Assembly: GCA_002269645.1 (NCBI GenBank)
Contig: NIVC01001508.1
Location: 62,001 to 126,000, forward strand
Direction of reading: 5' to 3'
Source of the DNA: Macrostomum lignano
Taxonomy: Eukaryota
DNA length: 64,000 bases
Below, in pieces: positions 32,302 to 63,140 of the stretch. Within the stretch, counting starts at the first letter, position 1, and every line of letters begins with the position of its first letter. Both the position numbers and the translations under genes were made by a program. The notes beneath the pieces were generated by a model. That model was not told the DNA's origin and did no database searches. It was given only the letters and a program-made list of their open reading frames with translations.

Positions 32302-33425
32302 ATGCAGCGCTTCAAGGATGCCCTGTCCCGAGTGCCCGTGGTGCCGGTTATCAAGCTGTATGGCAAGATCGCTGCCCCCACCAGCGGCTACAGCCGGGGG
32401 GTGATCAACTACCAGAGTGTGAAACCCCTGTTGGCCAAGGCCTTCAAGCAGAGACGGCTGGCGGCTCTAGCTCTGAGGATTAACAGCCCAGGTGGCTGGC
32501 CTGTGAGTTTGACAGCTGCTGATTCTCAGGTGTGACCACTGCCTCACCTCCCCGATTCTCAGGTGTAACCACTGCCCCACCTTATTCTCAAGTGTGACCA
32601 CTGCCCCACCTTCCGATTCTCAGGTGTGATCACTGCCCCACCTCCCCGGGTGTGACCACTGCCCCGGCTCCCCGATTCTCAGGTGGGACCACTGCCCCAC
32701 CTCCCCGATTCTCAAGTGGGACCACTGCCCCACCTCCCCGATTCTCAAGTGGGACCACTGCCCCACCTCCCCGACTCTCAGGTGTGACCACTGCCCCACC
32801 TCCCCGATTCTCAAGTGGGACCACTGCCCCACCTCCCCGATTCTCAAGTGGGACCACTGCCCCACCTCCCCGACTCTCAGGTGTGACCACTGCCCCACCT
32901 CCCCGACTCACAGGTGTGACCACTGCCCCACCTCCCCGATTCTTAGTTGTGACCACTGGATATGTTAACACCTAAATCACGATGCCTAATCCTCTCTCCC
33001 AGTGATTCAGTGTGGCTGCTAATTCCCTCCCTCAGAGGTGCAAACCACCCCTCGCTCCCGCAGGCGCAGTGCGACCTCATTCGCAACGAGATCAACCGTC
33101 TGTCAGCAGAGCACGGCAACATTCCAGTGCTGGCTTTCATTGAGGACATGGCAGCCTCGGGAGGCTATTACCTGGCCTGCAGTGCCAGCGAAATCTATGC
33201 CAACAGGCACAGCCTCATTGGCTCCATCGGTGCCCTGGCGGTGCACGCTGACCTGCAGACAGCGCTGCAGGAGCGGGCCAGCCTGGCCCTGACTCTGCAC
33301 CGGGCGGGCAAGCGGAAGGCCATCTTTAATAATTTGGAGGCCGCCAGCCCCGAGTCGCTGAAGTTCACCAACTACATGCTGCAGGGCATTCACGCCGGGT
33401 TCATTGACGTGAGATGCTCACGTGA

Positions 33426-33500
<75 letters not shown>

Positions 33501-33519
33501 GCCTGTCTGCCTGTCTGCC

Positions 33520-33564
<45 letters not shown>

Positions 33565-33659
33565 GCCTGTCTGTCTGTCTGTCTGTCTGTCTTAGTGTCT
33601 GTCTGTCTGTCTGTCTTAGTGTCTGTCTGTCTGTCTGTCTTAGTGTCTGTCTGTCTGCC

Positions 33660-33724
<65 letters not shown>

Positions 33725-33743
33725 GCCTGTCTGCCTGTCTGCC

Positions 33744-33824
<81 letters not shown>

Positions 33825-33867
33825 TAGTGTCTGTCTGTCTGTCTGTCTTAGTGTCTGTCTGTCTGCC

Positions 33868-33940
<73 letters not shown>

Positions 33941-33943
33941 GCC

Positions 33944-34003
<60 letters not shown>

Positions 34004-34376
34004 CATCTCAAGTCTCATCCAGATCCGCTCTGCTCAACCTCAGGTGGTAAAGTCATCCCGAGGCGACCGGCTCAAAGGCGCCCCGGAGTCCGAGCTATTC
34101 GAAGGCGACATCTGGCTGGCCGACAAGGCCCAGCAGCTCGGCCTCATCGACGGCGTCGGCGACCTCGAGGATGTGATCGCCAAGAAGTTCGGCCGCAGCG
34201 CCCGCCTGGTGGACATCGGGCCTCGGGGCTGGGCGAAGTTTGCCTCGGGTGCCGCTGGGGCTTCCGACATTCTCCAGGCTGCAGCCGCTGGAGGCCTCTG
34301 GTCCTCTGCGGCGGCCGGCGACCTCACTGCTGGCGACGGCAGCGGCTTTCGGGGTGGACCGCCGCTGGCCGCGTGA
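32302..34376 (+). CDS. S49-family (SppA/SohB-like) Ser-Lys peptidase; exons 32302-32502, 33064-33408, 34044-34376 (about 292 aa)
   Basis: Motifs [56 protein letters not shown] and [22 protein letters not shown]. Two phase-0 GT-AG introns are filled with host-type repeats. Confidence 0.88.
32530..32960 (+). repeat. 33-bp minisatellite in S49 intron 1
   Basis: Unit GACCACTGCCCCACCTCCCCGATTCTCAAGTGG. Confidence 0.93.
33425..34003 (+). repeat. (TCTG)n microsatellite in S49 intron 2
   Basis: Direct inspection. Confidence 0.97.
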
Positions 34377-35994: not shown

Positions 35995-37915
35995 ACATCC
36001 TGACCCTCACTGATATGGGATCCTGACCCTCACTGATCTGGCATCCTGACCCTCACTGATCTGGCATCCTGACCCTCACTGATCTGGCATCCTGACCCTC
36101 ACTGATCTGGCATCCTGACCCTCACTGATCTGGCATCCTGACCCTCACTGATCTGGCATCCTGACCCTCACTGATCTGGCATCCTGACCCTCACTGCTCT
36201 GACATCCTGACCTTAAATGATCTGACATCCTGACCTTTAATGATCTGACATCCTGTCCGTAAATGATCTGACATCCTGTCCTTAAATGATCTGACATCCT
36301 GACCTTTAATGATCTGACATCCTGACCTTAAATGATCTGACATCCTGTCCTTAAATGATCTGACATCCTGTCCTTAAATGATCTGACATCCTGTCCTTAA
36401 ATGATCTGACATCCTGACCTTAAATGGTCTGACATCCCGTCCTTAAATGATCTGACATCCTGTCCTTAAATGATCTGACATCCTGTCCTTAAATGATCTG
36501 ACATCCTGTCCTTAAATGATCTGACATCCTGACCTTAAATGGTCTGACATCCCGTCCTTAAATGATCTGACATCCTGTCCTTAAATGATCTGACATCCTG
36601 TCCTTAAATGATCTGACATCCTGTCCTTAAATGATCTGACATCCTGACCTTAAATGGTCTGACATCCCGTCCTTAAATGATCTGACATCCTGTCCTTAAA
36701 TGATCTGACATCCTGTCCTTAAATGATCTGACATCCTGACCTTAAATGGTCTGACATCCCGTCCTTAAATGATTTGACATCCTGTCCTTAAATGATCTGA
36801 CATCCTGTACTTAAATGATCTGACATCCTGTCCTTAAATGATCTGACGTCCTGTCCTTAAATGATCTGACATCCTGTCCTTAAATGATCTGACATCCTGT
36901 CCTTAAATGATCTGACATCCTGACCTTTAATGATCTGACATCCTGTCCGTAAATGATCTGACATCCTGTCCTGAAATGATCTGACATCCTGACCTTTAAT
37001 GATCTGACATCCTGTCCTTAAATGATCTGACATCCCGTCCTTAAATGATCTGACATCCTGTCCTTAAATGATCTGACATCCTGTCCTTAAATGATCTGAC
37101 ATCCTGACCTTAAATGGTCTGACATCCCGTCCTTAAATGATCTGACATCCTGTCCTTAAATGATCTGACATCCTGTCCTTAAATGATCTGACATCCTGTC
37201 CTTAAATGATCTGACGTCCTGTCCTTAAATGATCTGACATCCTGTCCTTAAATGATCTGACGTCCTGTCCTTAAATGATCTGACATCCTGTCCTTAAATG
37301 ATCTGACGTCCTGTCCTTAAATGATCTGATATACTGAACTTAAATGATCTGACGTCCTGTCCTTAAATGATCTGACATCCTGTCCTTAAATGATCTGACA
37401 TCCTGTCCTTAAATGATCTGACATCCTGACCTTAAATGGTCTGACATCCCGTCCTTAAATGATCTGACATCCTGTCCTTAAATGATCTGACATCCTGTCC
37501 TTAAATGATCTGACATCCTGTCCTTAAATGATCTGACGTCCTGTCCTTAAATGATCTGACATCCTGTCCTTAAATGATCTGACGTCCTGTCCTTAAATGA
37601 TCTGACATCCTGTCCTTAAATGATCTGACATCCTGTCCTTAAATGATCTGACGTCCTGTCCTTAAATGATCTGACATCCCGTCCTTAAATGATCTGACGT
37701 CCTGTCCTTAAATGATCTGACATCCTGTCCTTAACTGATCTGACATCCTGTCCTTAAATGATCTGACGTCCTGTCCTTAAATGATCTGACATCCTGTCCT
37801 TAAATGATCTGACGTCCTGTCCTTAAATGATCTGACATCCTGTCCTTAACTGATCTGACATCCTGTCCTTAAATGATCTGACGTCCTGTCCTTAAATGAT
37901 CTGATATACTGAACT
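35995..37915 (+). repeat. 23-bp minisatellite, about 1.9 kb
   Basis: Unit TGATCTGACATCCTGTCCTTAAA, preceded by CCTGACCCTCACTGATCTGGCAT variants. Confidence 0.97.
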
Positions 37916-40700: not shown

Positions 40701-41632
40701 ATCTCTTGAACACTTCACGACAATTCACGAAGTAAAGAGAAAAGCTGCAATACTAGCTCTGCCCAATGGTTCTAACTTGATCGCAGCTGCTGACTCGATC
40801 CATTGTAGAGCATTTGAGAGTAAATACTGTACAGTACAAGCTATGTCACCTGAACGCAGCTTTTTTGGTCCTGACGCGCTTGGAAAGGTTAAAATTAAAA
40901 TGGACTTACATGTACATGAAGCCTATACTGATTTATGAACTTTCTTATCAATTGAAATTAACATGTAGCTAAACTGAAAAGGCAAGAACTCTGATGGAAT
41001 TCCATTAAAATCTATTTAGTTTAACTGCATATAATATCTGTATAGTTACTCCTATAACTCAATTGCCTTGGGCAACTGTCACAGGGACTGGCCAAGGACT
41101 TTTTTACCTTATAGCATCTGGACTACTAGCAGAAATCGGAATGAGCCCTTAATTGTATTTTTTTCAAAAAAATGGTTAAATAAAACGGAGGAAGACGTAC
41201 ATACAGGTAATAAAACTCTAAGCTCTATAGTTTAGCGGCACAATACAGCGTCAGAATTCCGCACGTCAGCGCAACGTCAGCATACCGCAGAGTGGATCAT
41301 TTTCACGAGTAACCAAAGAAAATTCTTCTTTAAAAATTTCATGAATCGACTAGATTATTTTACTCGTAACATTCTAATCAATGCATTTAAACAGTCTATG
41401 ATTTTTAAATTAAAAAATTTAAGTTTTGGTCAAAACGAGTAATTTCAACCGTATTTTCAAGAATTCAGAACTTTATTACAGGCAATAGCTGCATGTGTTG
41501 CAATTTTACCGGGCAGCTACAACATCCGGCACGACCAACTGTGCATGATTAATTACCGCTCCAGTTTGAAGACGCTGGCATTAAACTTTAATTGCAAAAA
41601 TCACCGAAATACTTCCTAGCTGTCGAATTCAA

Positions 41633-41639
41633 TATAAAA
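41633..41639 (+). promoter_or_regulatory. TATA box of secreted Cys-rich gene copy 1
   Basis: TATAAAA 78 nt upstream of the ATG, conserved in the paralog. Confidence 0.6.
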
Positions 41640-41710
41640 GCAAGCGTGTATCGTGATTATAGGCTAAGTAATTTCAAAATCAGTTAAAGCACTGAAATAC
41701 CGATTGAGCA

Positions 41711-42082
41711 ATGAACTTCAGTTTGAAATTTCGGACTCGAATCGTCGTGCTGCTACTTGTGGCAGCCACAGGCGTCAGTGGCAGCTACAATTGCTTCTCA
41801 CATTACGGCATAGAGGTCGTTCCGGGCTACGAAGAAGCGCTGATCCGTGGCTTTATGAACGATTTAGGAATGAGCCCAGATGAGCCTCTCCTTGCGATGG
41901 ACTACAAGGAACTCGTAACCCAAATGAATATGATGTACTGCTTGGGCGATATGGTCAAACACGACTGGGGCGACCCCTGTGACAAGCGCGAGGTGATGCA
42001 GTGTTCGCTCTGCCCAATATTTTCACAGGTGTATGCAGCATGCAACAATGCAGACGTTTCGAGATGCTATTATATTTGGTAA
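41711..42082 (+). CDS. Secreted Cys-rich protein, 123 aa, copy 1 (unknown family)
   Basis: Single-exon ORF with a signal peptide and 7 mature Cys, a TATA box upstream and an intact paralog at 54824. Confidence 0.85.
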   Translation: MNFSLKFRTRIVVLLLVAATGVSGSYNCFSHYGIEVVPGYEEALIRGFMNDLGMSPDEPLLAMDYKELVTQMNMMYCLGDMVKHDWGDPCDKREVMQCSLCPIFSQVYAACNNADVSRCYYIW

Positions 42083-44268
42083 TCACTGCTTATATATTGT
42101 CTGATGTACGTAACCACACTGAAACTCAATCGCTATGCATAATTCACTCAGAATCTGCATGGGATTTTGATTAAAATACACGTCTACTGAAAGAACTGTT
42201 TCAGTCAAATTTCAAGCATCTATTATTGCATAAAAAAATGTTATCAATGTTTCTTTAACCTCGTGACATTCAAACAGAGTAAAAATTGACTTTGCCTGTT
42301 CATCAGTTGCACCGACACAGTCTTTAAGGTTTGAGGTGATGACTGTCAGGACTGTACAAAGAAGTGACATTTTGGAGCTTAAGAAACGTCGACACGCACT
42401 GACCAATTTTCGGAACAAGAAATCACAACTACTCTATACAGTAGAATTTTATGAGAAAAAAACTGTTGCGGGAATATAGTAATGGATAATAAAGTCAGAA
42501 TAATATAGTTGCGTAAGAGTGAGTTGATATATATATAATGGTTCTCTTCCAGCCAGAACATACACATGCAATGTAATAATCCTACAGAGTAGAGTTTTTT
42601 GTTGTCTTACACAAAAGGTCATACAGTGTCGTTGTGATATTACTCGTATTTTGCTAACGGTTAGTATCGCGGTAAGCCATAGTACTTGTAATGTTAAATC
42701 GCGGGACGCACTCGGTTGATTTTCGGTTGCATCCAGAAAGCCTAGGCAGATCTCTTCAGGTGTGATGTCAGTCGAGGAAGTCGCTTAATTGTCCTGCGAG
42801 GTAGAAGATATATGACAGACGGAGTTGGCGGTCGTACGGAATCGGCCAGCAGGTGTTGTACTTGTGTGGCTGCCTCATGGAGTGAATCGTTGTGGATGAT
42901 GAAGTACCATGATGGCATTGTTTGGGCAGATATGACGCTGTTGTGATGTAACGTCAGCAGCAGTTTGGTGCTGCTGCATACGTTTCTCAACTGTTCTGCC
43001 AATTGAGCGGTTAAAGAGTTTAATCGGGTGGTGATCAGTCACTCGAAAACTCCCACTTCCAGACCTTAAGCCTGGGAACAAAATTCAGTGATCGCGGTGG
43101 TGTCAGGCAAGCTCCAGCAAGCATCAGCGGCGCCAGTGACAACGCTCAGGACATCTCCAGTACGACCGAGAGTCGCGGTACAAGGACTTCTGCTGGCGAG
43201 GCATGTGCAGCCCGACGAAGGAGGTTCAGCAGCCACGGTGGCAGACAGCGATGACCAGGGCCTAGCGACATCACCGGTTTTCGGCGTCAGCAAGCGACTT
43301 CGGGTGCCAGAGTGCCAATCGTCGAGTCGGCTCGCGAATCGTCGGGTGTCCGTCGTGTTGGAGTCGAGTAGGAGTCCGGCGCAGCCCATTCGGCCTGATT
43401 TACTTCATTTTAGTGTATTTTTCATCATGCTTTTTGGTTCATGTTTTTTTTCAATTGACAATTTGACATTATTAAACTGTTGCTTTACTTTCATGTCGCA
43501 AGAAAGTTTTCAACGTTAAAGTAACATCGGTAGACAGTGGTGCAATTTTTTCGTTTCGTTGCGGTTGTCACCCCGAAGTTCTTGCTTTTTTTATTTTTCG
43601 CGTTTATTTCTCTAACATTTATCGTCCAAAATGCGTTTCCTCAACACTCGTACATTTTTCATATGCGTCAAACTCGTGTTTTCATTATTCGAATGTTGCT
43701 AACGCAAAGACTGCTCGTCATAAATCTCGTTGTCGTGCTATAAATTATTCGCGTTTATCCTCATTGCGCCGTCGTATCTGTCCAACTCATCGAATCCTGT
43801 CTTTGTCTCCATTCAGTCTTTGTTCTTGTGACTCGCCTTTTTAAGGAGGGGAGGATGTTGTGCAATCGTGCCCTTTCTCGCCCTCCTGCCCCGCCCCAAC
43901 CCTCCAGTCTGCCCCACCCCTCCAATCAATAATCAATGCGTACGCCGATCACGCCACCCCGCCCCACCTCCCCTGCTGTACCGTACATTTGTTCTTAAGT
44001 TATATTCATGTACGCGTAGGACCAATGAAAAATATATATTCGCTGTCTGGAGGGCAGACTCCTCCCTTGCGCGCGTTGGTCCGCCTCCGTTGGCTATTGA
44101 ATAAAACGACTCGTCGATCTACCATAAAAAGTGCACGGCGAACTGCATCGGCTACGGTGTGTAAGTTCGTGTTCGCGAGTTACTGCCCTTTTTCTGCTTC
44201 TCCCTAGGGCGCGGGACGGGAGCTCTGACTGGGGACCTGGGGGTCGCAGCTTCCTGACAGGTTAAAGC

Positions 44269-47103: not shown

Positions 47104-48864
47104 ATGGCGCACGACCTCGCAGCTCACAGCCGATCGCTGTCCTCAGCCATGGCGACTGCCGGGTTTCGCTCAACAAACGCAGCGGTGCAGAGCGGCCTCG
47201 CAATGGCAGCTGAGGAGCTGGGCCGACTGCTGGCTAAAAGCTGCCACATCTTTGGCAGCTACGCTGACGGCTGGGGCTCCAACCTGTGCTGCATCAATGG
47301 AGACGTCGCTCCAGACTCCGACATCGACGTGACGTACATCATGACAGACGCGAGCCAGCAAATCCACATTCACCCGCAAGTCGCTGACGGACAGCGGGCC
47401 GAATTTCGACACAACGACTGCCAGCTGACTGAGCCTGCGGAGTACGAGGACGGGCACGTCAAGGCGCGCGTTCGCAGTAAGGAAATTCTCGCTATAATAT
47501 CATACTAATGCATTAGATATGAAATTTAGATATGTACAGAAACGAAATATATCATCTACATCTGTCCTGAAAATGCAGTTTTAGCGCCGAATATCGCATT
47601 GGAAGTGTCGCAGATGTTCCCTGCAATAGACCTGATTTTGGCGCATTCCTGCTGCGGCTACCCTCACATCGAGCTGCTGCGGCCCGGATACAGGACTTGC
47701 ATGTCCGATGACATCATGAGGGCGCTCAGAGAAGAGGTGCTGGGCGAGTCGCCAAGGTGCCACGCCGTCAGCAGCGCGCCGCCCGGTCTGGAGGGCAGCC
47801 GACTTCGAGTGAGCACAACCCTGCTGGAAAGGTCCGTCATGCAGCATCTCACCACCGTGCAGGGTCAGTTCTTCATCCTCGTCAAGTTCCTCATCAAGAG
47901 GGTGATCGGCAGCAGAGTGAGCGGTCTGAAGACGTACGTTGGCAAAAACTTGCTGTTCTACATGCTCGACGAGACACCGGCGAAGGACTGGAAGTCGGAC
48001 AACCTGCTGGCGCTGGTGCAGCACTCGTTGGACATTCTCGTGGCAATGATGGAGAGCTCAGACTCCGAGGACGCCTGCATGAGACATTTTTTCTTGCGTG
48101 ACGCCAGAGTGTTCTTCAAGCGAGAGCACGACTCAAAATCGAGGATTGTAGCAGCCGTCCGTCAGTCAGCAGACAACCTGCTCAGCGACCTGAAACCGTT
48201 CAAAGAGTCTCTGCCTAAATTTGAGGTCAACGTGATTCTCCTTTCGTTTATCTCTTACTACCTTCTAGCAGTAGAGTTACTGGAATGCAGTGATTTCAGC
48301 TTGACAAAATACGCTTCCACAATGCAGACGGCAACTGAGCTTTGGTTAAGCATCAGGAGTGAAGCTCCGGTCGGGTCTCGGTCTGGCAGATTGACTCAAC
48401 TTTTGTCGGACGTCGAGCGCCAGATTCCAGACAGCGCTCAGGTCGGCAAAGCCTATCTCAGAGCCGCTGCTCTCTTCAAAATGGGTCAGCTTGTCACACC
48501 AGAGCTGGAGGAGGCGGCAGGTGCATCTCTGGGCTATATTCGGTGTCCGGAGGGCGACGACAACTCCCTGACGGTGGCTTCGGCCAAGTCACTAGCTGTG
48601 GACAAGCTTGTGCAGACTCGCTGCCTGGGTGTCACAGCGGCAAACGGCCAAATAGTGGACTGCCCGAAGCTGGTTAATGAATACGGGCCGGTTGTGTCTT
48701 TGTTTGAGAAGCACCTGTGCGGCTTCAAAGTGACGAGGCAGCAAATGCTTCTGGCCTTGGCTTCCGGCTCCCTTTGCGCAAGACTCTGGATGAGTAATGT
48801 GAGTGCTCAAGAGATCGGGGGTCGCTTGTTTATTATTGGAAATGAGCTCTATTCACTCTTTTGA
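47104..48864 (+). CDS. Mab-21/cGAS-like receptor (cGLR-type) nucleotidyltransferase; exons 47104-47476, 47579-48864 (about 552 aa)
   Basis: NTase motif FGSYADG...DSDIDV and a third acidic residue in AIDLILA. Mab-21 C-lobe motifs RVSTTLLE, LKTYVGKNLLFYML, W..DNL and CMRHFFL. One phase-1 GT-AG intron. Confidence 0.85.
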
Positions 48865-49759: not shown

Positions 49760-52700
49760 TGACAGAGGCGTAAGCGTAAGCAGGAATTCTAATTGGAGGG
49801 TGCCGCAACCTTGATTGGTGCAAATATTTGGTTTTCTTGTCTCTAGGTGGGCATCCCTTTCTCTTGGTGGGCGCCCAGCTGTCTCTTGATGTCCACGCCA
49901 GTCTGTTGGTAGGTGTAAAACGAGTGAGGTTTGAGATTGCGAGAAAACCGTTTTGGCGCTCAGGCCTGACAATTGATATATATTATAAGCCGAAGATTGA
50001 GGTGGGGTTTGGGTGTTGCACACGCACGGGCGCAACCGCACGTTGCAAACAACCACCCCCCATATACAAGCACGTACAAATATGACTACGAACAACATTA
50101 GAATATTTATAGGTGCATAGAATGCTCACACCACTTCCCCACCAGGGTTTAAAAGACACAACACAATGTCTATGGCAAAAGTTCACAGAAAATCAAGCAT
50201 TCACATTGGGCGATAAAAATCAGGAGGTCTTCGCTCTCTGGCCGACCGTCTCGGCAGCTGAGCCTCTTGCTGATTGGTCTCGGTCGCTGCAGCTGAGCCT
50301 CTTGCTGATTGGTCTCGGTCGCTGCAGCTGAGCCTCTTGCTGATTGGTCTCGGTCGCTGCAGCTGAGCCTCTTGCTGATTGGTCTCGGTCGCTGCAGCTG
50401 AGCCTCTTGCTGATTGGTCTCGGTCGCTGTCTCATCCGGTCCGCCGTTACCGTCGAACAGCTGCACCCAGGCATCAGGCGCCTGGAGCTGAGGGTCAACC
50501 AGTCCGTCAGCAGCCTCATCTGCGGTAGCCTGCAGGTCGTCGCCGGGCCGTAAGGAGTTGCGCCGTTCCACAAATGGTTTGAGCCGGTCGTGGTGCACCA
50601 CCTGCCTGCGTCGCATCCGCACGCCGGGACCCGAGGCCGGCCGCACTCGGTAGTTGACCTCGCCGAGCCTCTTCAAGATGATGTACGGCCCGGTCCAGCG
50701 GTTACTGAGGCTTTTTGATCTGCCAGGTTTCACCACCTTGCAGCTCAGCATCACCAAGTCGCCCTCTTTGTACGGCCGGAACCGAGTCTCCATGTTGTAC
50801 CGCTCGTTGCGCTCGGTCTGTGACGCCTGCAGTTGCTGATGGACACGCGCCCGGCTGTCCAGCAGGCGCCTCTGAGTTGCCTCTGCAAAGTCCAGCGCAT
50901 CAGTGAAGCCATTCAATGCTTTGGGCAGCTTCGAGTCGATTGGCAGCCTTGGTGGCCATCCGTGCAGCGTCTGGTACGGCGACAGGCCCGTGGTCGAGTG
51001 CACCGAGCTGTTGAAGGCCCACGTGACGAAGGCAAGTTGGAGGTCCCAGTCGTCCTGATCCTCTGCCACAACCGTCGCTAGCATGTCACCAAAGGTTCGG
51101 TTTCCGCGCTCGACCAGGCCGTTGCCGCTGGGATGGAAAGGCAAAGTGCGGCTTTTCTGCATGCCGAGCCGCTGGCACAGGGACTGGAACAGATGGCTTT
51201 CGAATTGACACCCTTGGTCGCTGTGGATTGCGTCTGGGACGCCGTGCCGAAGCGCTACCTGCCTGACCATAGCGTCGGCCACCCGCTCAGCCTCGATGCT
51301 CGGTAGAGCGCAGGTCTCCATCCACTTTGAGAAGCAGTCAAAGATGCTCAGCACGTAACTGTTGCCTCGTGGTGTCCTTAGCAGCGGACCCTTGATATCG
51401 ATCTGGACCATCTCCCATATGGCCTCGACGGCAGTGGAGTCGCTTGCAGTGGTGATCGCTGCGGCCGACTGCTGTTCTTCCGCCGAAGACAAGCGGCGCA
51501 GCTGGCGACCAGTTCTTGACGTCGTTGTGCATGCCCGGCCACCAGCAGCGGTCGGCGAGCTTGTCCAGCGTTCGGTCTGTGCCGAGGTGACCGCTGCAGG
51601 CGGCGTCGTGCGCGTCAGCCAGGAAATGCGCACGCAGGTGGCTGGGCACCACCGGTTTGCCCTGCCGGACCAGCTCACCGTGTTGCCCGATCTCGATGTC
51701 GCCATTTGCTATGAATTCTTCGAATCGCTGCTGACAGCCTTTGGACAGGTGGACGAAGCTGTCACTGATCGCCTTGAAGACATTCTGCAGAAGGCTGTCT
51801 CGGAGCTGCTCTGCCAGGAAGTCATCGCGATTTGCTAGTTGAGTGACAGCCGTCCGACTGAGCAGGTCTGGCACCACGTTCTCCCGCCCTGCCGATAGCA
51901 GAGCGCGAAATTGAACTGCTGGATGGTGTCGAGCCAACGTGCCAGCCGACCCTCTGGCTCCTTGGTCTGCAGCAGGCCCTTGAGCGGCTGGTGATCGGTA
52001 ACACAGTGAAGTCTTTCACGTTGCACAGGTAGGCTCTGAAGTGCTTGAGACTCCAAACCAAGGCGAGCAGTTCCCTGTCAGTGGCCGAGTAATTTCGTTC
52101 CGCCTTGTTGAGGGTCCTGAAGGCAAACGCCACTGGAAGCTCCGCGTCTCCGTAACGCTGGCAGAGAACCGCACCCACTGCGATGGCGCTGGCGTCGCAG
52201 CTCAGGACAAATGGTCGGCTGAAGTCCGGCAGGCGAAGCACAGGTGCTCGCCCAAGTTGGTCCTTGAGCGTCTGGAAGGCCGTCTCGCACTCGTCTGTCC
52301 AGGTGAAGCCCGTCTTCTGTGTTGCAGCATGCAGTGGTGCTGCTGTCTTGCTGAAGTCCCTGATGAATCTGCGATAGAAGCACAACATACCGATGAATCG
52401 TCGCACCTCCTCGGCAGAACTTTGTTACTGAATCTTGGCCAGGGCCTCCACTTTGTCCGGATCCGGCCGAATTCCTTCCCGGCTGACGATGTGGCCCAGG
52501 TACTTCACGCTCCTGTGAGCGAACACCGACTTGTCCTTGTTGAGCTTCAGTCCCGCAGCTCGCAGCCTGTCAAAAACTTTGCGCAGGCTGGCCAGATGCT
52601 CTTCGAAGCTCCGACTGAACACGATCAAGTCATCCACGTAGACTAGCACCTCCTCCCAGGTCAGGCCGGACATAACGAGCTCCATTAGCCTCTGGAAGGT

Positions 52701-54379
52701 CGCAGGAGAGTTGCAAATACCGAAGCCCATCTTCTTGAACTGCATAAGGCCTCGCGTGGAATAGAAAGCAGTCTTGTAGCGGTCTGCCTCGTCGACCACG
52801 ACCTGGTTGAGCCCCTGCTTGCAGTCGATGGTGGTAAACCAAGAGCAGCCCGCCAGAGCATCCATCGATTGTTGCAGGTGCGGCAGGGGGTAGGCGTCCT
52901 TGATGGTCACAGCGTTCAACTGACGCCAGTCGGTGCATAGGCGGATGTCGCCGCTCTTTTTCCGGACGACGATCAGATTGCTGGCCCAGGGCGAGTTGGA
53001 CGGCTCAATGATGTCGTGCTCCAGCATCTGGCCGATTTTCTGGTCGACCTGGTCACGAACCGGCAGCGGAATCGGTCGCTGGCGCTGCTTGTAGGGCTCG
53101 CTGTGGAGCCGAGGTCGTACTCGTGAGTGCTGAATAGGTCACCGTTCGCCTTGAGCAGTGCCAGTAGTCTCTGCCTTTCAGCCGCATCCAAGTCAGGGTT
53201 GACATCCCAGCAGTCCGACTGCTTGACTGTGCCAGCGCTGTTGTTGATCAGGTCGGCAGCTTCAAAAGAGCCGACGGCCTTGTTGGCGTAGAGCAGCACC
53301 TCCTCGGAGCCTAAATTGCACACCCGGACTGGAATCTTCTGATCAGCTGAAACGGTCAAAACTCTCGAGACAAGCAAACCAGTCGCTGGTAAAGTTGGCG
53401 TCGGGCTCGAAGATGCCTTGCTCGTCTTCCGACTTGACGCGGAGCCACACCAGCTTTTCGCTGCGTGCTGGAACACTTGTGTTGCTTTCCACTCGAGCAA
53501 CGAGGGTGCCGGTCACCATTCGGACGCTTGAGCTGCTGTTGAAAGAACGGGACTTTCTCTCCGTTGAGGCATACGGTCCTACCAACGATGTCGATCTGAA
53601 GCTCTCGGGTGGCTTGGGTGATGAAGTCCATGCCGAGGATGAGATCAGACTGATGTTCTCCACCACGTTGAGCTCGTGGACGACCTTGACTGACTGGCCG
53701 ACTTGAATTGTGGCTCGGGAAATCCCGATGCAACTCAGGCGGCCACCATCGACCGAAGTCGGGCAGCAGCTTCACCGGGCTCGATCTGAAGGCCGCAGAC
53801 TTGCGCGAGGCTGCGGCTGATCAAGGATGTCTGTGCGCCAGTGTCGAGCAGGAAACTGACCTCCTTGCCTTGCAGAAGCGCACGCACGAAGATGGAGAGT
53901 GCAGATTGGGCACTTGATTGACGGGTTGGAGCTGGCCCTTCGCTGCCAACCCTCAGAAGTTTCCCGACGGCCGAGCCTTTGACGGACAGACAGCCGCGCC
54001 GTGGCCCCAGCCGGAGCAGTTGAAGCAGCGACCTTGGCCCTGAGATCCGCCAGCAGGGCACCGGCGGGCGATGTGGCCTTCTTACCGCACCGAAGCAGCC
54101 TGATGACCGCTGCTGCTGATCTCTCTGTCTGCCGCCACCGCGTCCTCTCGCGCTGCCGCCCCTCGTCACCGCAGCCGTCAGGGTCTCCAGCTGCTGCTCC
54201 AGCCGTGCCAGTCGATCTTCAACCATCGCCACTGCGGGCGAGTTGCCTGGTTTGCATTTTCTCGCGATTTGCTCCAGCCTCGTGGCCTGCTCGACCAGCT
54301 CCTCCAGCGTGCAGGAGTCCAGGTCCCTGTCCTTGAGCAGGGTGTCGCGTATTTCCGCAGTCATCAGCTGAAGTCGATA
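49760..54379 (-). mobile_element. Ty3/Gypsy LTR retrotransposon, 5'-truncated and frameshifted (gag CCHC, protease, RT, RNase H, integrase, 3' LTR)
   Basis: Protease FLLDTGA, RT with YVDD (52425-53027), RNase H CDAS...DRELLAL (51822-52406) and integrase IHSDQG...GLVER (50170-51705). A polypurine tract lies at 50131-50144, followed by an LTR starting TGTGAG at 50130 and probably ending about 49760. Domains are split across several frames. Confidence 0.92.
50257..50430 (-). repeat. 35-bp tandem repeat in the Gypsy integrase tail
   Basis: About 5 copies of GCTGAGCCTCTTGCTGATTGGTCTCGGTCGCTGCA (plus strand). Confidence 0.9.
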
Positions 54380-54745
54380 ATTTTCACGAGTAACCAAAGG
54401 AAACTCTTAATTAACAAATTCATGAATTGCTGATGTTTCCAAAACAGAGGTTGTTTTAACGTTCTAGTCAATGCATTTAAACATTTTATGTTTTTAAAAA
54501 CATTTTCTGTCAAAACGAGTACTCGTAATTTTTTAGTTCTTTAATTTTTTAGTTTTTAGTTTTTTAATTCTTTTTAAAGAATTCAGTGTTTTATTACATG
54601 CAGTAGCTGTATCCCCTGTGTGTGTTAGAATTTTACGGGTCAGCTACAATAACCGGCACAATCAACTTTGCATGATTTCCGCTCCAGTTTGAAGACATTA
54701 AATTTATATTGGAAAAATCACCGAATTGCTTCCTGTCGAATTCAA

Positions 54746-54752
54746 TATAAAA
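54746..54752 (+). promoter_or_regulatory. TATA box of secreted Cys-rich gene copy 2
   Basis: TATAAAA 78 nt upstream of the ATG, in the same context as copy 1. Confidence 0.6.
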
Positions 54753-54823
54753 GCAAGCGTGCATCGTGATTATAGGCTAAACAATTTCAAAATCAGTGAA
54801 AGCACTGAAAAAACGATTGAACA

Positions 54824-55195
54824 ATGAACTTCAGTTTGAAATTTCGGACTCGAGTCGTCGTGCTGCTGCTTGTGGCAGCCGCAGGCGTCAGTGGCGGCTA
54901 CGACTGCAACCCAGGTTACGCCATAGAGGTCGTTCCGGGCTACGAAGAAGCGCTGATCCGGGGCTTAATGAACGATTTTGGAATGAGCCCAGATGAGCCT
55001 CTCATTCCCGTAGACTACAAGGAACTCGTAACCCAAATGGGTATGACGTTCTGCATGGGCCAAACGGTCAGCCACGACTGGGGCGACCCCTGTGACAAGC
55101 GGGTGGTGCATCAGTGCTCGTTCTGCCCAATTTTTTCACCGGTGTTTTCACCATGCGACAATTCTGACGCTTCGAGATGCTATTTTGCTAAATAA
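54824..55195 (+). CDS. Secreted Cys-rich protein, 123 aa, copy 2 (unknown family)
   Basis: Gap-free paralog of 41711-42082 with all 7 Cys and the DKR site conserved. Confidence 0.85.
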   Translation: MNFSLKFRTRVVVLLLVAAAGVSGGYDCNPGYAIEVVPGYEEALIRGLMNDFGMSPDEPLIPVDYKELVTQMGMTFCMGQTVSHDWGDPCDKRVVHQCSFCPIFSPVFSPCDNSDASRCYFAK

Positions 55196-57156
55196 TAACT
55201 ATACTTATGCATCATCATGCGGTGCCTGCTGCACGAAACCACTGACAACCAATTGGCTATGCGGATGCACTCAGAATCTGGGCTTTTGATTTAAATACAC
55301 GTATTGTACTGAAAGAACTGTTGCAGTCAAATTTTAAGCCTAACTTACGAGCTCGTAATTAACAGTAGGAATACCAAGCCATTTTCCGCCCGTCGAACTA
55401 CCAAAGAGGGGGGAAGTTCCCCCCCCCCTGACAATTTTTTTTGCACCGGAACGGAGCAACGCAGGCACAAGAAATTCAAGAACACGGGCCAACTTTTTTT
55501 GCGCACCTGCTCAAACAAGAATCAAGTCGCCAGCCCTTCAGACCGTCGAGATATTGGACGATTCTGCCAGAATGTCGGATTTTTCCCATAAGTGCTAGTG
55601 TATGATCAGTACACCCCTGTGCGACAAGCAGCACTGCGCCTCAACACAGCCTTGCCAAGTCTCCAAATTTCAATAGCTCGTCGATGTGTCTGTGTCTGCA
55701 TCAGCAGCTGTGACTTCGTTGGTCCTTCAGCCTTCACCCAGGTGGAGCTTCTGGACCTTCAACAGGTGGCACCAGCTGACTATAAACACCCTGATACGAA
55801 TTTCTCGAGTTTCGCTGATCAAGCCTCGACAGTGGGCAAACCTCAACTGCTAGGTATCCTCAGCTAGTCTCTTGAGCATTCCGTCATCACCCGGACACCG
55901 TCGGCACCTTTAACAGATTACACCAGGTGATTATGGACATCCTGTTGCAAATATGTCAGGTTTTTCTTATTTATCAAGCTTCAATAATGGGCAAAACCTC
56001 AACTACCGGACATTCTCAGCTAGTCTATCGAGCCTTCAGTCATCACCCCGACGCCGTCGGGACCTTCAATAGGTGGCACCAGGTGAGTAAGGACACCTGA
56101 GCGTGATTTGTCATCATGCTCTTAACATTTCTGAAGCTCTTAAAATTTTTTAAGCACGTACATTGCTTTAGCTAAGCTTGAACTCATGTTGCTGTACATT
56201 TATATTATTAATACACATATTCTATACATAGGAGCTACATACTATATTTTATTCTACAAGCTGTTTAGTTTATTCAACTACAAGCTGTTGAAACCCGCGG
56301 ATTTTGAACCCAGGGAATTCCAATCCCCGGAACTACTTTTGCATGTATTCTGAAATCTAAGGCCATACACAAACAAAAACTTGTTAATAGTTAGTAGGAT
56401 AGAGGTAGACATAAAATTAGGATTTGAAGCAAACATTGATATTGTTGGCTGGGGTACTTCACAGAATGTCAGGCAATGTCTGTCTGACTCTAAAACATGT
56501 ATTGGCAAACTCTGGCCTCTCCCTGACTCTCCCTATGTCCCTTGGATCCTTTAAAATTTCTATCGTCTCTTCTGTTTCCTCTCTTCTCTCATATCTTCCC
56601 TCATCTCTCTTATCTCTTGTCTCTTCTCTCTACTCTTTCCTCTCTCTCTCCTCTCTACTTTTCGTTTTCTCTCTTCTCTCCTCTCTCCTGTCTCCTCTCT
56701 ACTTATCGTTTTCTCTCTCCTCTCTACTCTTTCGTTTTCTCTCTCCTCTCCTCTCTCCTATCTTCTTTCGTATCTTCCCTCATCTCTCTTCTCTTTCATA
56801 TCTCTTATCTCATCTCTTCCCTTTTCTTTTCTCTCTCTCCTCTCTACTTTTTCGTTTTCTCTCTTCTCCTCTCTCTCCTCTATCCCCCTCTTCTCTCGTC
56901 TCTTCCTTCTCCTCTCTATTCTTTTCTCTCTTCTCTTAACTCTCTCCTCTCTCCTCTTTCCTCTCTCTCCTCTCTCCCCTCTTCTCTCGTCTCTTCTCTC
57001 ACCTCTTTCCTCTCATCTCTTTTCTTGTTTTATCTCTTCTCTCTCCCCTCGTCACTCGTCTCTTCCCTCACCTCTCTTCTCTCTTGTCTGCGTTTTTATC
57101 TCCCCTTTCTCTTATTTTATCTTTTCTTTCTTATCTCTTCTCGTTTCTCTCTGCTC

Positions 57157-57324
<168 letters not shown>

Positions 57325-57432
57325 TCTCCTCTCCCATCTCTCTTCTCCTCTCTACTCTCTCCCCTCTTCATTCTCCTATTTCATCTTCTCTCTCTCTGTC
57401 TCTCCTCTCTCCTCTAGTCTCTGTAATCTCTT

Positions 57433-57967
57433 CTTTTGTATATTCTCAGCATTTATTCTGCATCAACATTTCTATTGTTTCTTGACACCCTGTACTTTTT
57501 TATTACACTTTTTACTTTTACTCTTTTGCTTATCGTACAATTGCTCTTTTTAGTTTTTCACCTTTTTTATTTATTGAGGTCCATTTTGTAAAGTGCTTAG
57601 AGTCACTCTTTCCCCTTTTTAGACACCGGTGCAGTCGCACCATTCCATTATTTATTTCGTGTGTAGGATCGCTGCAGCCCACGTGCGGTTCACGTTATTT
57701 GTGCACTGTTTTTTATTTTGCATTTTCAACTCTAATAGTGTTTTATCGACTCACACCAAGTGTACATACCGTACGCTCTCTATCTACCTGTCTACTCTCT
57801 CTCCCCTCTAACCCGCCTATTTAATAACTTTTACAACACCACTTGTCGCTACTTTTCACTTGCCCTGACGAAGAATTTACCTAATTCGAAATATCGGCAA
57901 CTTAAATCAACTTGACTTGTTTGTCCTTTTTACATGTACCGCGTCCGTGCCTGAGATTGGAGGCGCC
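57433..57967 (+). mobile_element. Penelope-like element terminal fragment inserted in Helitron-like unit 1
   Basis: Absent from unit 2. It contains a TATTTAA motif followed by a hammerhead, and is flanked by a direct duplication of host-unit sequence. Confidence 0.55.
57860..57900 (+). ncRNA. Minimal type I hammerhead ribozyme (Penelope-like element type)
   Basis: UUGCC-CUGACGA-A-GAAUU(UACCU)AAUUC-GAAA-UAUC-GGCAA: stem I UUGCC/GGCAA, stem II GAAUU/AAUUC, palindromic AUAU stem III, predicted cleavage after C57895. Confidence 0.8.
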
Positions 57968-58046
<79 letters not shown>

Positions 58047-60085
58047 TCTCCTCTCCCATCTCTCTTCTCCTCTCTACTCTCTCCCCTCTTCATTCTCCTA
58101 TTTCCTCTTCTCTCTCCCTGTCTCTCCTCTCTCCTCTAGTCTCTGTAATCTCTTCTCTCTTATCTCTCCTCTGTTCTCTCTACTCTCCCATCTCTCGTCT
58201 GTTCACCCTCATCTCTGCTCTCTCATCTGTCATCTTTACTCTTTAATACGTTCTCTCACTTATCTCCTCTGTACTCTTCTCTTTCACCTCTTCTGACTCC
58301 TCTCTTTCCTTACTCCTCTCTTCTTTTCTCTTCCCTCTTCTATACTCTCTCTTCTCTATTATCTTTTCTCGTCTCTCTGCACTCTCCTCTCACCTTTTTC
58401 ATCTCTCATCTTTACTCTCTCATCTCTCCTTTCATTTGTCTCATCTCTACAATCTCATCTCTCCTTTCTCCCCTCTTCTTACACCCCTCTCTTATCTCTA
58501 TCTCTTCTCTTCTCACTCCTCTATCCCCCTCTTATCTCCTCTCTTTTCCTCTCTTTCTACTCTCTCCTCTCCTCTTGACCCTCTGTCATCTTCTTTCTGC
58601 TCTCTCATCTCTACTCTCTTCTCACTCTCCTTTACTCTCCTCTCATCGATCCTCTGTCTCATCTCTCCCCTCTTCTCACCTTTACTCTTTCCTCTCACTC
58701 CTTTCTCCCCTCCTCTCGCTTCTTCCTCCCTTCTTCTCTGCTCTCTCTTCACCACTTGTCTCTCCTCTTATCTTCCATGTTTTCTCTTATCCCCCTCTCG
58801 CCTCTCCTCTCTTCTAATAGTCTATTCCTTCTCCTTTCCACTCTCATCTGGCCCGCACATAAGCTGGATTCTTTATCTGGCTTTTGAAGTAAAAGTCTGC
58901 CGATCCCTGCTTCGAAAGCCAGTTTGTTGGACGTACTACTCTCATCGTTATTCTCATGCTTTGATCACGTCATCTTTCTTGCCAATTTGCAGCCCTGAAA
59001 GGAATTTGTGTATCTTCAGCTCCACTGCAGTCTGCATCAGTCTAACAACCAAGGAAATACGCATTTCTTAGGCCATTTAAATTTCAAAGTACTTTTAAGA
59101 GAAACTTAAAATTTCCATGGTGTGCCTAATTTAGTAGGGTTGTATTTCATTGCATCGCATCGCCTTTTCATAAATCTTTCGCTTTTACAAACCATGCTGG
59201 ATTGCCTCGATTTTCCAATTGCCATCCACTGTTAAACTGCTGCAGAGTTTGCCTATACAGAGGGGAGGGCAGTGGTTAGAATTTCTCACTAAACTGTTAT
59301 GGCTAAACGTAGCCTCTCCACTCTCGGGGTGCGAGATTGCGAGAAGGATATAAATAAAGTTATTCCAAAACACTGTACATTTGCTATGTACATTCAGTCC
59401 TATCGCCTGACCCTTCGTCTGGCTCTGGGGGAATGAGTGAGTGAGTGGCACAAACAACAGAAAAAGCAGACAAACTTCACATGCTTACAGTTTCTTTTTC
59501 GGTTGAGTTACAGAGTTGAAACTTTACATTTAGATAGAGAATGAGTCAATGAAGAATTGTGTCAAGTTTAAAGTCAATCGCTTCACGTGGAGCAAACTTA
59601 TGGCAGCTGAAAGTTAGTCAATTTTGAAACCCTTTTACACATATGGGCCCAGATCGGTATCGGGAAAGAGAGGCAGGCGGGCGGAGGTTGGGGTGGTTGC
59701 TACGCTGAAAAAAAACAGCCTAACTTTAAAAGTGCACAGCGGCTTTAGGATTAACTTTGAGATTTGAAATTTTACACGATTGTGTCAAAATAGCTGAAAA
59801 TTGCCTGTGTCAAATTTGAAGAGAATCGGTAGAAGTGGAGCGGCGCTATGGAGGATTTAGTGAAAAAATCGCGCATTTTGAGCAGTTTTTTGTACTTTTA
59901 GGTAGGAAGACTTGAGTCTAGGAAATTAAAAGGTAGCCTAAGACATTCTCCGTAGTAAGTTTAGGGTGGGTGTAAAGTTTGGTGTCATTTGGTTGAGCGG
60001 TTTGGGAGTCCATAGCGATCAAAATTGTCCACAGACACACAGACAGACAGACACACAGACAGAGTTTTGATTTTTATAGTTAGAG

Positions 60086-61003
60086 ACAAGCTGTTGAAAC
60101 CCGCGGATTTTGAACCCGGGGAATTCCAATCCCCGGAACTACTTTTGCATGTATTCTGAAATCTAAGGCCATACACAAACAAATTAATAGTTAGTAGGAT
60201 AGAGGTAGACATAAAATGGAGCACATTTGTGTAAAATTAGGTTTTGAGGCAAACGTTGATATTGTTTGCTGGAATGCTAGGGTACTCCACAGAATGCCAG
60301 GCAATGTCTGTCTGACTCTAAAACATGTATTGGCAAAATCTGGCCTCTCCCTGACTCTCCCTATGTCCCTTGGATCCTTTAAAATTTCTATCGTCTCTTC
60401 TGTTTCCTTTCTTCTCTCTCATCCCTCGTCTCTCGTCTCTCCTCTCTTCTTTCGTATCTTCCCTCATCTCTCTTCTCTTTCATCTCTCTTATCTCATCTC
60501 TTCCCTATTCTTTTCTCTCTCCTCTCCTCTCTCCTCTCTACTCTTTCGTTTTCTCTCTCCTCTCCTCTCTCTTCTCTCCCCCTCTTCTCTCGTCTCTTCC
60601 TTCTCCTCTCTATTCTTTTCTCTCTTCTCTTAACTCTCTCCTCTACTCTCTCATCTCTCCTCTCTACTCTTTCCTCTCTCTCTCCTCTCTCTTCTCTTCT
60701 CTCGTCTCTTCCTTCTCCTCTCTATTCTTTTCTCTCTTCTCTTAACTCTCTCCTCTACTCTCTCATCTCTCCTCTCTACTCTTTCCTCTCTCTCTCCTCT
60801 CTCCCCTCTTCTCTCGTCTCTTCCCTCACCTCTTTCCTCTCTCTCTTTCCTCTCATCTCTTTTCTTGTTTTATCTCTTCTCTCTCCCCTCGTCGCTCGTC
60901 TCTTCCCTCACCTCTCTTCTCTCTCGTCCGCTCTTTCATCTCTCCTTTCTCTTCTTTTATATTTTCTCTCTTATCTCTTCTCGTTTCTCTCTGCTCTGCG
61001 CTT

Positions 61004-61081
<78 letters not shown>

Positions 61082-63140
61082 CCCATCTCTCTTCTCCTCT
61101 CTACTCTCTCCCCTCTTCATTCTCCTATTTCCTCTTCTCTCTCCCTGTCTCTCCTCTCTCCTCTAGTCTCTGTAATCTCTTCTCTCTTATCTCTCCTCTG
61201 TTCTCTCCACTCTCCCATCTCTGGTCTGTTCATCTGCTCTCTCATCTGTCATCTTTACTCTCTTATACGTTCTCTCACGTATCTCCTCTGTACTCTTCTC
61301 TTCACCTCTTCTCACTCCTCTCTTTCCTTACTCCTCTCTTCTTTTCTTTTCCCTTTCTATACTCTCTCTCCTCTATTATCTTCTCTCGTCTCTCTGCACT
61401 CTCCTCTCACCTTTTTCATCTCTCATCTCTTCTTTGATCTGTCTCATCTTTACAATCTCATCTCTTTCCTCTCTCCTCCTCTTCCCTTTACTCTCTCATC
61501 TCTCCTTTCTCCCCTCTTCTTACACCCCTCTCTTATCTCTATCTCTTCTCTTCTCACCCCTTCTCTCCCCCTCTTATCTCCTCTCTTTTCTATCCTTTCT
61601 ACTCTCTCCTCTCTAATCTCTCATCTCCTCTTGACCCTCTGTCATCTTCTTTCTGCTCTCTCATCTCTCATCTCCTCTCATCTCTTCTCACTCTTCTCTA
61701 CTCTCCTCTCATCGATCCTCTGTCTCATCTCTCCCCTCTTCTCGCCTTTACTCTTTCCTCTCCCTCCTTTCTCCCCTCCTCTCACTTCTTCCTCCCTTCT
61801 TCTCTGCTCTCTCCTCACCACTTGTCTCTCCTCTTATATTCCATGTTTTCTCATACCCCCTCTCGCCTCTCCTCTCTTCTAATAGTCTATTCCTTCTCCT
61901 TTCCACTCTCATCTGGCCCGCACATAAGCTGGATTCTTTATCTGGCTTTTGAAGTAAAAGTCTGCCCATTCCTGCTTGGTAAGCCATGCAGTTTGTGGGA
62001 CGTACTACTCTCATGGTTGTTCTCATGCTTTGATCACGTCATTTTTCTTGCCAATTTGCAGCCCTGAAAGGAATTTGTGTATTTTCAGCTCCACTGCAGT
62101 CTGCATCAGTCTAACAACCAAGGAAATAAGCATTTCTTAGGACATTTAATATTTAAAGTACTTTTAAGAGAAACCTAAAATTTCCATGGTGTGACTAATT
62201 TAGTAGGGTTGTATTGCATTGCATCGCCTTTTCATAAATCTTTCGCTTTTACAAACCATGCTGGATAGTGGATTCCCTCGATTTGCCCATTGCCAATTGC
62301 CATCCACTGTTAAACTGCTGCAGAGTTTGCCTATACAGAGGGGAGGGCAGTGGTTAGAATTTCTCACTAAACTGTCATGGCTAAACGTAGCCTCTCCACT
62401 CTCGGTGTGCAGAGAAGGCTATAAATAAAGTTATTCCAAAACACTGTACATTCGCTATGTACATTGAGCCCTATCGCCTGACCCTTCGTCTGGCTCTGGG
62501 GGGAATGAGTGATTGAGTGGCACAAACAACAGAAAAAGCAGACAAACTTTACATGTTTACAGTTTCTGTTCTGATTGAGTTAGAGAGTTGAAACTTTACA
62601 TTTAGACAGAGAATAAGTCAATGAAGAATTGTGTCAAGTTTGAAGTCAATCGCTTTACTTGGAGCAAACTTATGGCAGCTGAAGGTTAGTCAATTTTGAA
62701 ACCCTTTTACACATCTGGGCCCAGATCGGGAAAGAGAGGCAGGCGGGCGGAGGTTGGGGTGGCTGCCTCGCTGAAAAAAACAGCCAAACTTAAAAGTGCA
62801 CAGCGGCTTTCAGGATTAACTTTGAGATTTGAAATTTTACACGATTGTGTCAAAATAGTTGAAAATTGCCTGTGTCAAATTTGAAGAGAATCGGTAGAAG
62901 TGGAGCGGCGCTATGGAGGATTTAGTGAAAAAATCGCGCATTTTGAGCAGTTTTTTGTACTTTTAGGTAGGAAGACTTGAGTCTAGGAAATTAAAAGGTA
63001 GCCTAAGACATTTTCCGTAGTGAGTTTAGGGTGGGTGTAAAGTTTGGTGTAATTTGGTTGAGTGGTTTGGGAGTCCATAGCGATCAAAATTGTCCACACA
63101 CACACACACACACAGAGTTTTGATTTTTATATGTAGAGAT
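60086..63140 (+). mobile_element. Non-autonomous Helitron/Helentron-like unit 2 (head-to-tail with unit 1)
   Basis: Same 5' and 3' ends. 60086-60400 matches 56279-56580 and 61890-63140 matches 58830-60085. Confidence 0.55.

Follow-up and report, generated by a model that had tools for sequence, protein, structure and literature searches.

Two short open reading frames (ORFs) of equal length, at 41711-42082 (copy A) and 54824-55195 (copy B) of a 64,000-nucleotide stretch of Macrostomum lignano DNA, raise the question of what kind of protein they encode and what has shaped the amino-acid differences between them. This stretch, hereafter the window, belongs to assembly GCA_002269645.1, contig NIVC01001508.1, and a window coordinate equals the record coordinate minus 62000. 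The interpretation that we favour, with a probability of approximately 55%, is that the two ORFs belong to a lineage-restricted family of ovary-region proteins that are predicted to be secreted, combine a conserved scaffold with a diversifying surface, and may have a role at the egg or in mating. Under this interpretation, A and B would be functional paralogs within a small family that is seen, in the databases searched, only in M. lignano, and about half of their codons would be frozen while the other half gain replacements at approximately four times the synonymous rate.

Both copies encode 123 amino acids followed by a stop codon and align without gaps. Nucleotide differences occur at 52 of 372 positions (21, 16, and 15 at the first, second, and third codon positions, respectively); 33 of 123 residues differ, and five codons carry a synonymous difference only, which reproduces the counts of the original prediction, a model's reading of the same DNA. 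The duplication exceeds the ORF: the region 41291-42217 corresponds to 54372-55339 over approximately 930 bp (self-BLAST, 81% identity over 789 bp, E = 0), and the duplicated unit comprises a promoter with a TATAAAAG box, the 5′ untranslated region (5′UTR), the coding sequence (CDS), and the 3′UTR. Because the match extends over the whole unit at E = 0, the similarity between A and B is not due to chance. No further copies or fragments were identified in the window by tblastn (E ≤ 10).

Copy B is the annotated gene Mlig015797. Loci on two further contigs (L003 and L005) carry B at 99.3% identity over 8-11 kb and are haplotigs or assembly redundancy; a one-base homopolymer deletion is present in L005. 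The exact protein of copy A was not found in the public protein collection. A third paralog, A′, corresponds to Mlig014020g1/g2 (loci L001 and L002) and is 92-94% identical to A over only approximately 1.1 kb, with a protein that is only 86% identical to that of A. The TGT codon of Cys90 has been deleted in A′, changing GDPCDKR to GDADKR in frame, and this is the sole CDS indel in the family. Three distinct sequence types have thus been found, A and B in the window and A′ elsewhere, and a further A-type transcript, scaf227G1, has been published.

The product of these genes looks secreted. Direct reading of the N-terminus revealed an n-region with K6, R8, and R10, a hydrophobic core (IVVLLLVAA), and VSG ahead of the likely cleavage site. 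As had been claimed, only two replacements (I11V and T20A) separate A and B within the first 24 residues, the predicted signal peptide, compared with 31 differences among the 99 residues of the mature protein (p = 0.022). The mature protein is approximately 11 kDa, acidic (pI 4.3, net charge about -8), and Met-rich, and its conserved blocks are EVVPGYEEALIRG..MNDxGMS, DYKELVTQM, and HDWGD. Conservation of all seven Cys, EVVPGYEEALIRG, and PCDKR, as originally stated, holds for the A-B pair and breaks down in A′ with the deletion of Cys90, so that the mature protein contains seven Cys in A and B and six in A′. The Cys residues are spaced C-x48-C-x12-C-x7-C-x2-C-x9-C-x7-C; six are invariant across the family and would allow three disulfides, whereas Cys90 is dispensable. 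The disulfide-linked dimer that had been proposed from the odd Cys count is weakened by the same deletion. DKR is invariant in all full-length copies. AlphaFold2 yielded a mean pLDDT (predicted local distance difference test) of 43.3 for the precursor with five sequences and of 40.2 for mature B with two sequences, values too low for a usable model.

Between A and B, the Nei-Gojobori method counts 290 nonsynonymous and 79 synonymous sites (approximately 79% nonsynonymous), and the raw ratio of 33:5 looks extreme because most sites are nonsynonymous. The 42.3 nonsynonymous and 9.7 synonymous substitutions give 4.4:1 against a neutral expectation of approximately 3.7:1, with a nonsynonymous divergence (dN) of 0.162, a synonymous divergence (dS) of 0.134, and a dN/dS ratio (omega) of 1.21 by the Nei-Gojobori method (NG86) or 1.32 by maximum likelihood (Fisher p = 0.85 versus 1). 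The "strong excess" of amino-acid changes that had been announced therefore disappears in the formal dN/dS comparison of the pair, which is not significantly above 1. Pairwise omega is 2.4-2.5 for B versus A′ (p = 0.058) and 0.62 for A versus A′ (dS 0.115).

Models M0, M1a, and M2a were fitted to the three paralogs A, A′, and B with our own GY94-type likelihood code. Under M0, omega is 1.43, a value that does not differ from 1 (p = 0.29) and exceeds both 0.5 (p = 0.001) and 0.2 (p about 1e-10). M2a is preferred over M1a (likelihood-ratio test statistic 12.8, p = 0.0017); it places 56% of codons in a class with omega 0 and the other 44% in one with omega 4.4. None of 100 parametric bootstrap replicates under M1a reached 12.8, the maximum being 6.3, and fits with equal codon frequencies or with the mature region only gave p = 0.002-0.024 and an omega for the second class of 3.3-4.5. 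The earlier proposal of diversifying selection on the mature protein is thus partly supported, by an M2a class with omega of approximately 3.3-4.5 at about half of the codons, and not by the gene-wide dN/dS, which is indistinguishable from 1.

Comparison of the whole duplicated unit indicates where it is constrained. The Jukes-Cantor divergence (K) between A and B is 0.34 in the distal 5′ flank, 0.10-0.13 in the proximal 5′ region, 0.04 in the signal peptide, 0.19 in the mature CDS, and 0.23 in the 3′UTR. Because K is lowest there, the promoter, the 5′UTR, and the predicted signal peptide are the constrained parts of the unit, and the mature CDS changes at about the same pace as noncoding DNA or slightly slower, not faster. 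There are 15 indel events in 528 aligned bp of the flanks versus none in the 372-bp CDS (P about 3e-5; P = 1e-3 with the conserved proximal promoter alone as reference). The ORF is held open by selection, and a drifting pseudogene is ruled out because the CDS is free of indels against these 15 flank events. Copy B combines an open frame with an annotated, quantified single-exon transcript, and the function of copy A is supported by its intact ORF, its promoter, and the published A-type transcript elsewhere.

The published transcript of B, mikado.scaf1509G14, lies on the plus strand and is single-exon because its exon length of 550 equals its span; it has a baseMean of 181 and is labelled "Ovaries-specific" (PMC12896417 Table S10). 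At least this member of the window pair is therefore transcribed. The A-type transcript mikado.scaf227G1, a 714-nt single exon with gff_match NA and a baseMean of 532, carries the same "Ovaries-specific" label (PMC12896417 Table S10), and its protein is 85.4% identical to that of A′. Both transcripts fall in the aneuploid DV1_10 line, with log2 fold changes of -1.43 for B and -1.41 for scaf227G1 (PMC12896417), an equal drop that fits their common promoter. The label is taken from the "Arbore_et_al" column of the same table and denotes a positional RNA-seq class of cut worms; it was defined by Arbore et al. (2015; PMC4490696), and five of five tested [+,+,0] candidates were ovary-specific by in situ hybridisation. 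Expression in prostate, rhabdite, or adhesive glands, where the original prediction had suggested looking, is contradicted by this class for both B and the A-type copy.

The Mlig gene models were derived from transcriptome data (PMC5730564). Identifiers of the family genes occur in no main text of the literature searched; they are present only in PMC12896417 and were not found in the searched parts of the supplements of PMC5816591, PMC5730564, PMC7336406, and PMC5946080. The transcript length of 550 nt coincides with the end of the A-B homology and that of 714 nt with the end of the A-A′ homology; therefore, the duplicated units end at poly(A) sites.

Some repeats accompany the units. At the A′ locus, a 112-nt piece of its own promoter, from -240 to -129 of the ATG, is repeated in inverted orientation approximately 800 bp past the stop codon with 95% complementarity (L001 9761-9872 versus 11174-11285, and likewise in L002). 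This inverted repeat is missing from window copies A and B; it could derive from a transposon or from a partial duplication in inverted orientation. The unit edges (41300-41450, 54380-54560, and 55345-55365) repeatedly carry short palindromes of the type ACGAGTA/TACTCGT, including TTACGAGCTCGTAA, which directly follows transcript B at its 3′ end, and GTCAAAACGAGTACTCGTAA, located upstream of B. Such edge palindromes might have been left behind by a mobile element that dispersed the unit.

Taken together, a compact intronless TATA unit would produce an mRNA of 0.55-0.71 kb and a 123-aa precursor, from which removal of the signal peptide would leave the acidic protein of approximately 11 kDa. 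Cells of the ovary region, most likely growing oocytes, may export it through the secretory pathway to oocyte granules, the egg surface, or the egg envelope. Oocytes of this species deposit eggshell and yolk granules (PMC4490696). A disulfide and helical scaffold, to which the blocks EVVPGYEEALIRG..MNDxGMS, DYKELVTQM, and HDWGD would contribute, may present the variable surface to a fast-changing partner, with received sperm, ejaculate components, or microbes as candidates; exposure to such a partner would drive diversification of the paralogs. The moderate expression argues for a role in recognition or signalling over a bulk structural role in the eggshell. A bulk eggshell precursor was considered unlikely, given that the protein lacks enrichment in Gly/Tyr and is moderately expressed, and an antimicrobial peptide was rejected in view of the strongly acidic mature protein and the neutral to acidic peptides that follow the Lys-Arg (KR) site.

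Several observations weigh against a diversifying egg or mating protein. Neither the A-B pair nor the three-paralog M0 fit has a gene-wide omega significantly different from 1, and the dN of 0.16-0.19 does not exceed the divergence of the 3′UTR (0.23) or the distal 5′ flank (0.34), so that by the yardstick of the flanks, "fast" could mean weakly constrained. Six Cys would be invariant by chance with a probability of (1-0.31)^6, or approximately 0.11, which makes their invariance weak evidence. The expression class is one of body region, not cell type, and gut cells lying level with the ovary are a known confounder (PMC7336406); no published gene model was found for copy A, the expression of which is taken from the A-type transcript scaf227G1. 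The site test is based on three sequences and assumes that no gene conversion has occurred and that mutations change single nucleotides only. Twelve codons, however, carry two or more differences (permutation p = 0.0065), and A and A′ form a mosaic, with differences at 7 of 422 positions (1.7%) in the 5′ flank, 22 of 294 (7.5%) in the mature CDS, and 9 of 130 in the 3′UTR (Fisher p = 1.5e-4).

The rate comparisons among these points are what relaxed constraint would produce, that is, near-neutral drift of duplicates that are redundant in a genome with recent polyploidy and much duplication, with selection at only a few positions such as the Cys and the core helix. In addition to the omega values near 1 (1.2-1.3 for A-B and 1.43 under M0) and noncoding divergence of 0.23-0.34, omega is 0.42 on the A branch alone, and the lack of a stop codon after 52 random substitutions has a chance of approximately 0.08, which is not compelling alone. 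M1a is, however, exactly a model of this kind and was rejected in favour of M2a (p = 0.002; 0/100 simulations), the CDS has no indels versus 15 events in the flanks, and the genes are expressed and co-regulated. We therefore regard relaxed constraint as an unlikely, albeit serious, account of the family.

The mosaic and the codons with several differences bear on whether omega above 1 is an artefact of a mosaic history, in which the site model mistakes for positive selection the codon-level rate heterogeneity produced by multinucleotide mutations and by conversion between paralogs, some of them perhaps unsampled. The A-A′ mosaic is a sign that the unit, or its 5′ part, underwent gene conversion, and identity between A and A′ drops to 77% upstream of the unit, suggesting that the unit has been homogenised. 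Synonymous sites are raised between A and A′ as well (dS 0.115), which protein selection does not explain. Gene conversion was kept as an explanation because it can inflate site-model tests. Replacements nevertheless prevail on the long B branch as well, which shows no evident conversion tract, and the result survives other codon-frequency models and removal of the signal peptide; moreover, conversion alone cannot explain an excess of nonsynonymous over synonymous changes at half of the codons. An artefact of this type accordingly has, in our judgement, a low but appreciable chance of being the whole explanation.

A further possibility concerns the layout of the precursor. In a prohormone or pheromone precursor of conotoxin-like design, a convertase would cut after Lys92-Arg93 and release a 30-aa, two-disulfide, hypervariable active peptide, with the signal peptide and pro-region serving folding and sorting. 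The sequence does hold the corresponding prohormone- or conopeptide-like features, namely a signal peptide, the invariant dibasic site within DKR, and a C-terminal Cys framework, and the cleavage at KR that had been suggested would be compatible with them. The Cys of A′ are split into two before and four after KR, and the density of A-B replacements climbs from 8% in the signal peptide to 26% (18/69) in the pre-KR part and 43% (13/30) in the post-KR part. This post-KR enrichment is not significant (13/30 versus 18/69, p = 0.10), and the supposed pro-region holds the longest conserved blocks, suggesting a function of its own. The dibasic site is single and has no amidation signal, and the peptides beyond KR are hydrophobic with a neutral to acidic character. 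A prohormone layout is thus doubtful. Its more specific version appears improbable: an oocyte precursor resembling those of conopeptides, with a frozen promoter, signal, and pro-region, would release at KR a peptide whose targets lie outside the egg, namely received sperm, the partner, or conspecifics. If this is true, the peptide would serve sexual conflict or gamete recognition on the female side of a simultaneous hermaphrodite, with gene duplication as its route to diversification.

The secreted ovary-region family that we favour has no detectable relatives outside M. lignano in the collections searched, in line with the initial statement that no family was recognised. A word-indexed search of 5.8 billion proteins recovered M. 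lignano copies only. An exhaustive HMMER profile search of 1.84 billion representatives gave one additional match, a Cys-free bacterial repeat protein of 2380 aa, which was rejected as spurious because its score is summed over 11 repeats of approximately 21 bits each at 23% identity. Against Pfam-A, A, B, A′, and their mature forms matched no family by hmmscan (E ≤ 10), with only a chance zinc-finger match at E = 0.21, and a PDB sequence search (E ≤ 10) gave only a chance DNA-polymerase match at E = 0.33 and no Frizzled or sFRP chain.

UniRef and UniProt nevertheless attach the automatic name "FZ domain-containing protein" to A0A267DEL4, A0A267GLR0, and A0A267F043, which are A′ and B proteins. 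It is extremely unlikely that the family represents a diverged cysteine-rich domain of Frizzled type (FZ) that would bind Wnt-like or lipid ligands. Beyond this name, the likeness to the Frizzled cysteine-rich domain (CRD; PROSITE PS50038 / Pfam PF01392) amounts to a similar size (approximately 100 aa, partly helical). A threshold as permissive as E ≤ 10 brings up no Pfam Fz match for any of the three proteins A, B, and A′, and alignment of the family profile with the mouse Fz8 CRD (sequence verified against PDB chain 6ahy_A) in hhalign gives a probability of 0.08% and E = 0.63. Six or seven differently spaced Cys are found rather than ten in five disulfides, and the near-identical allele A0A267GQI4 lacks the name. 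All similarity tests run were negative, and FZ membership was rejected; the UniProt name, which we flag as probably wrong, probably arose from a marginal, false-positive profile match.

Among known systems, female-derived, Cys-stabilised pheromones and egg factors such as Aplysia attractin are small, secreted proteins with six Cys. The family described here resembles them by analogy only, being small, predicted to be secreted and partly helical, equipped with six invariant Cys, and assigned to female reproductive tissue, and no sequence or motif similarity to the attractin type was detected. A closer parallel in layout is offered by the accelerated evolution of conopeptides and venom phospholipase A2 (PLA2), with a conserved signal, a less conserved pro-region, a dibasic site, and a variable part with a Cys framework, and with a promoter and 5′UTR that are more conserved than the mature coding sequence. 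Unlike those toxins, to which there is no sequence similarity, the present family belongs to the ovary region instead of a venom gland, has an acidic mature protein, 3-4 loci, and a putative cleavage site, and carries its best conserved blocks and 2-3 Cys in the N-terminal part.

The nearest known kind is that of the taxon-restricted reproductive genes of Macrostomum (Arbore et al., 2015; Brand et al., 2020), with which the genes share the species and the expression class; they are likewise short, predicted to be secreted, and without homologs. Genes of the ovary, testis, and tail regions show higher protein divergence in the genus, and the ovary-region class has poor ortholog detection (PMC7336406). 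The present family differs in that it has not been described previously and in that its evidence comes from paralogs of one genome and not from orthologs across species. It is of a known kind, rapidly evolving, taxon-restricted reproductive secreted proteins, a pattern already documented for ovary-region genes of the genus, while the family itself is uncharacterised.

The coordinates of the two gene units and of other features of the window are listed below.

Table. Features of the two gene units and of their surroundings (window coordinates).
Feature	Coordinates	Strand	Remarks
Gene unit A (promoter, 5′UTR, CDS, long 3′UTR)	41287..42391	+	Common with B to 42217 and with A′ to ~42391; L001 and L002 match 41287-42391 at 92%
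TATA box TATAAAAG, copy A	41633..41640	+	Sequence read; in a near-identical block of the aligned copies with scattered single differences
CDS, copy A	41711..42082	+	123 aa + stop, intronless
Predicted signal peptide, copy A (residues 1-24, MNFSLKFRTRIVVLLLVAATGVSG)	41711..41782	+	Cleavage site from the -3/-1 rule; 3/72 nucleotides differ from B
Lys92-Arg93 dibasic site, copy A (AAG CGC)	41984..41989	+	Candidate convertase site; precedes 30-aa, 4-Cys segment 41990-42079
Gene unit B	54372..55339	+	3′ end is the annotated transcript end
TATA box TATAAAAG, copy B	54746..54753	+	Sequence read, alignment
Published single-exon transcript of B, mikado.scaf1509G14 = BOX15_Mlig015797g1	54792..55341	+	scaf1509:116792-117341, 550 nt
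CDS, copy B	54824..55195	+	123 aa + stop; identical to Mlig015797 protein
Ty3/gypsy-like pol region	50170-54397	-	Upstream end abuts 5′ boundary of unit B (54372)
Aspartyl protease ORF	53735-54397	-	Part of pol region
Reverse transcriptase ORF	52425-53027	-	Part of pol region
RNase H ORF	51822-52406	-	Part of pol region
Integrase ORF	50170-51705	-	Part of pol region
Tandem 35-bp repeat	50254-50429		Five perfect (100%) copies
Mab-21-like ORF	47599-48861	+	421 aa
Peptidase_S49 ORF	32962-34050	+	Residues 52-149 match, E = 1.5e-17
8-bp microsatellite	33426-34003		Entered by 3′ part of Peptidase_S49 ORF
Minisatellite arrays	1300-38000		More than 20; examples 2894-5546 and 35995-37911
CT-rich low-complexity tracts	56580-61710		Long, strong strand skew
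Duplicated segment of ~2.1 kb	57965-60086 / 60993-63139		90% identity; just downstream of copy B

Between the two copies, the intervening 13 kb include a Mab-21-like ORF and the pol region of a long terminal repeat (LTR) retrotransposon, whose ORFs are distributed over several frames; a search for flanking LTRs within 44-57 kb found no pair. The tandem 35-bp repeat lies inside the C-terminal part of the integrase ORF, and its perfect identity suggests a very recent expansion. The Mab-21 C-terminal (HhH/H2TH-like) domain is matched at E = 3e-5, just above the Pfam cut-off, and the ORF may represent all or part of a cGAS/Mab-21-like gene. The match to Peptidase_S49, the family of SppA-type signal peptide peptidases, is unusual for an animal genome, and this ORF may represent either a genuine gene's exon or a fragment gained by horizontal transfer. 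The window is otherwise dominated by separate minisatellite arrays at very high tandem-repeat density. Most have periods of 19-24 bp, copy numbers reach 128, and each array has a different unit.

For M. lignano, a model species in research on hermaphrodite sexual selection and sexual conflict, RNA interference and transgenesis are available. We know of no characterised female-side molecule in this species. Studies of its rapidly evolving reproductive proteins have focused on male products of the prostate and seminal fluid, for example, in a screen of seminal-fluid proteins (PMC5977470). If the signal described here merely reflects relaxed constraint or gene conversion, these genes would be ordinary orphan duplicates. 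Their compact conserved promoter, approximately 250 bp in length, could serve as an ovary-specific driver, and a secreted ovary-region family with a diversifying surface would, if true, be a concrete female-side candidate.

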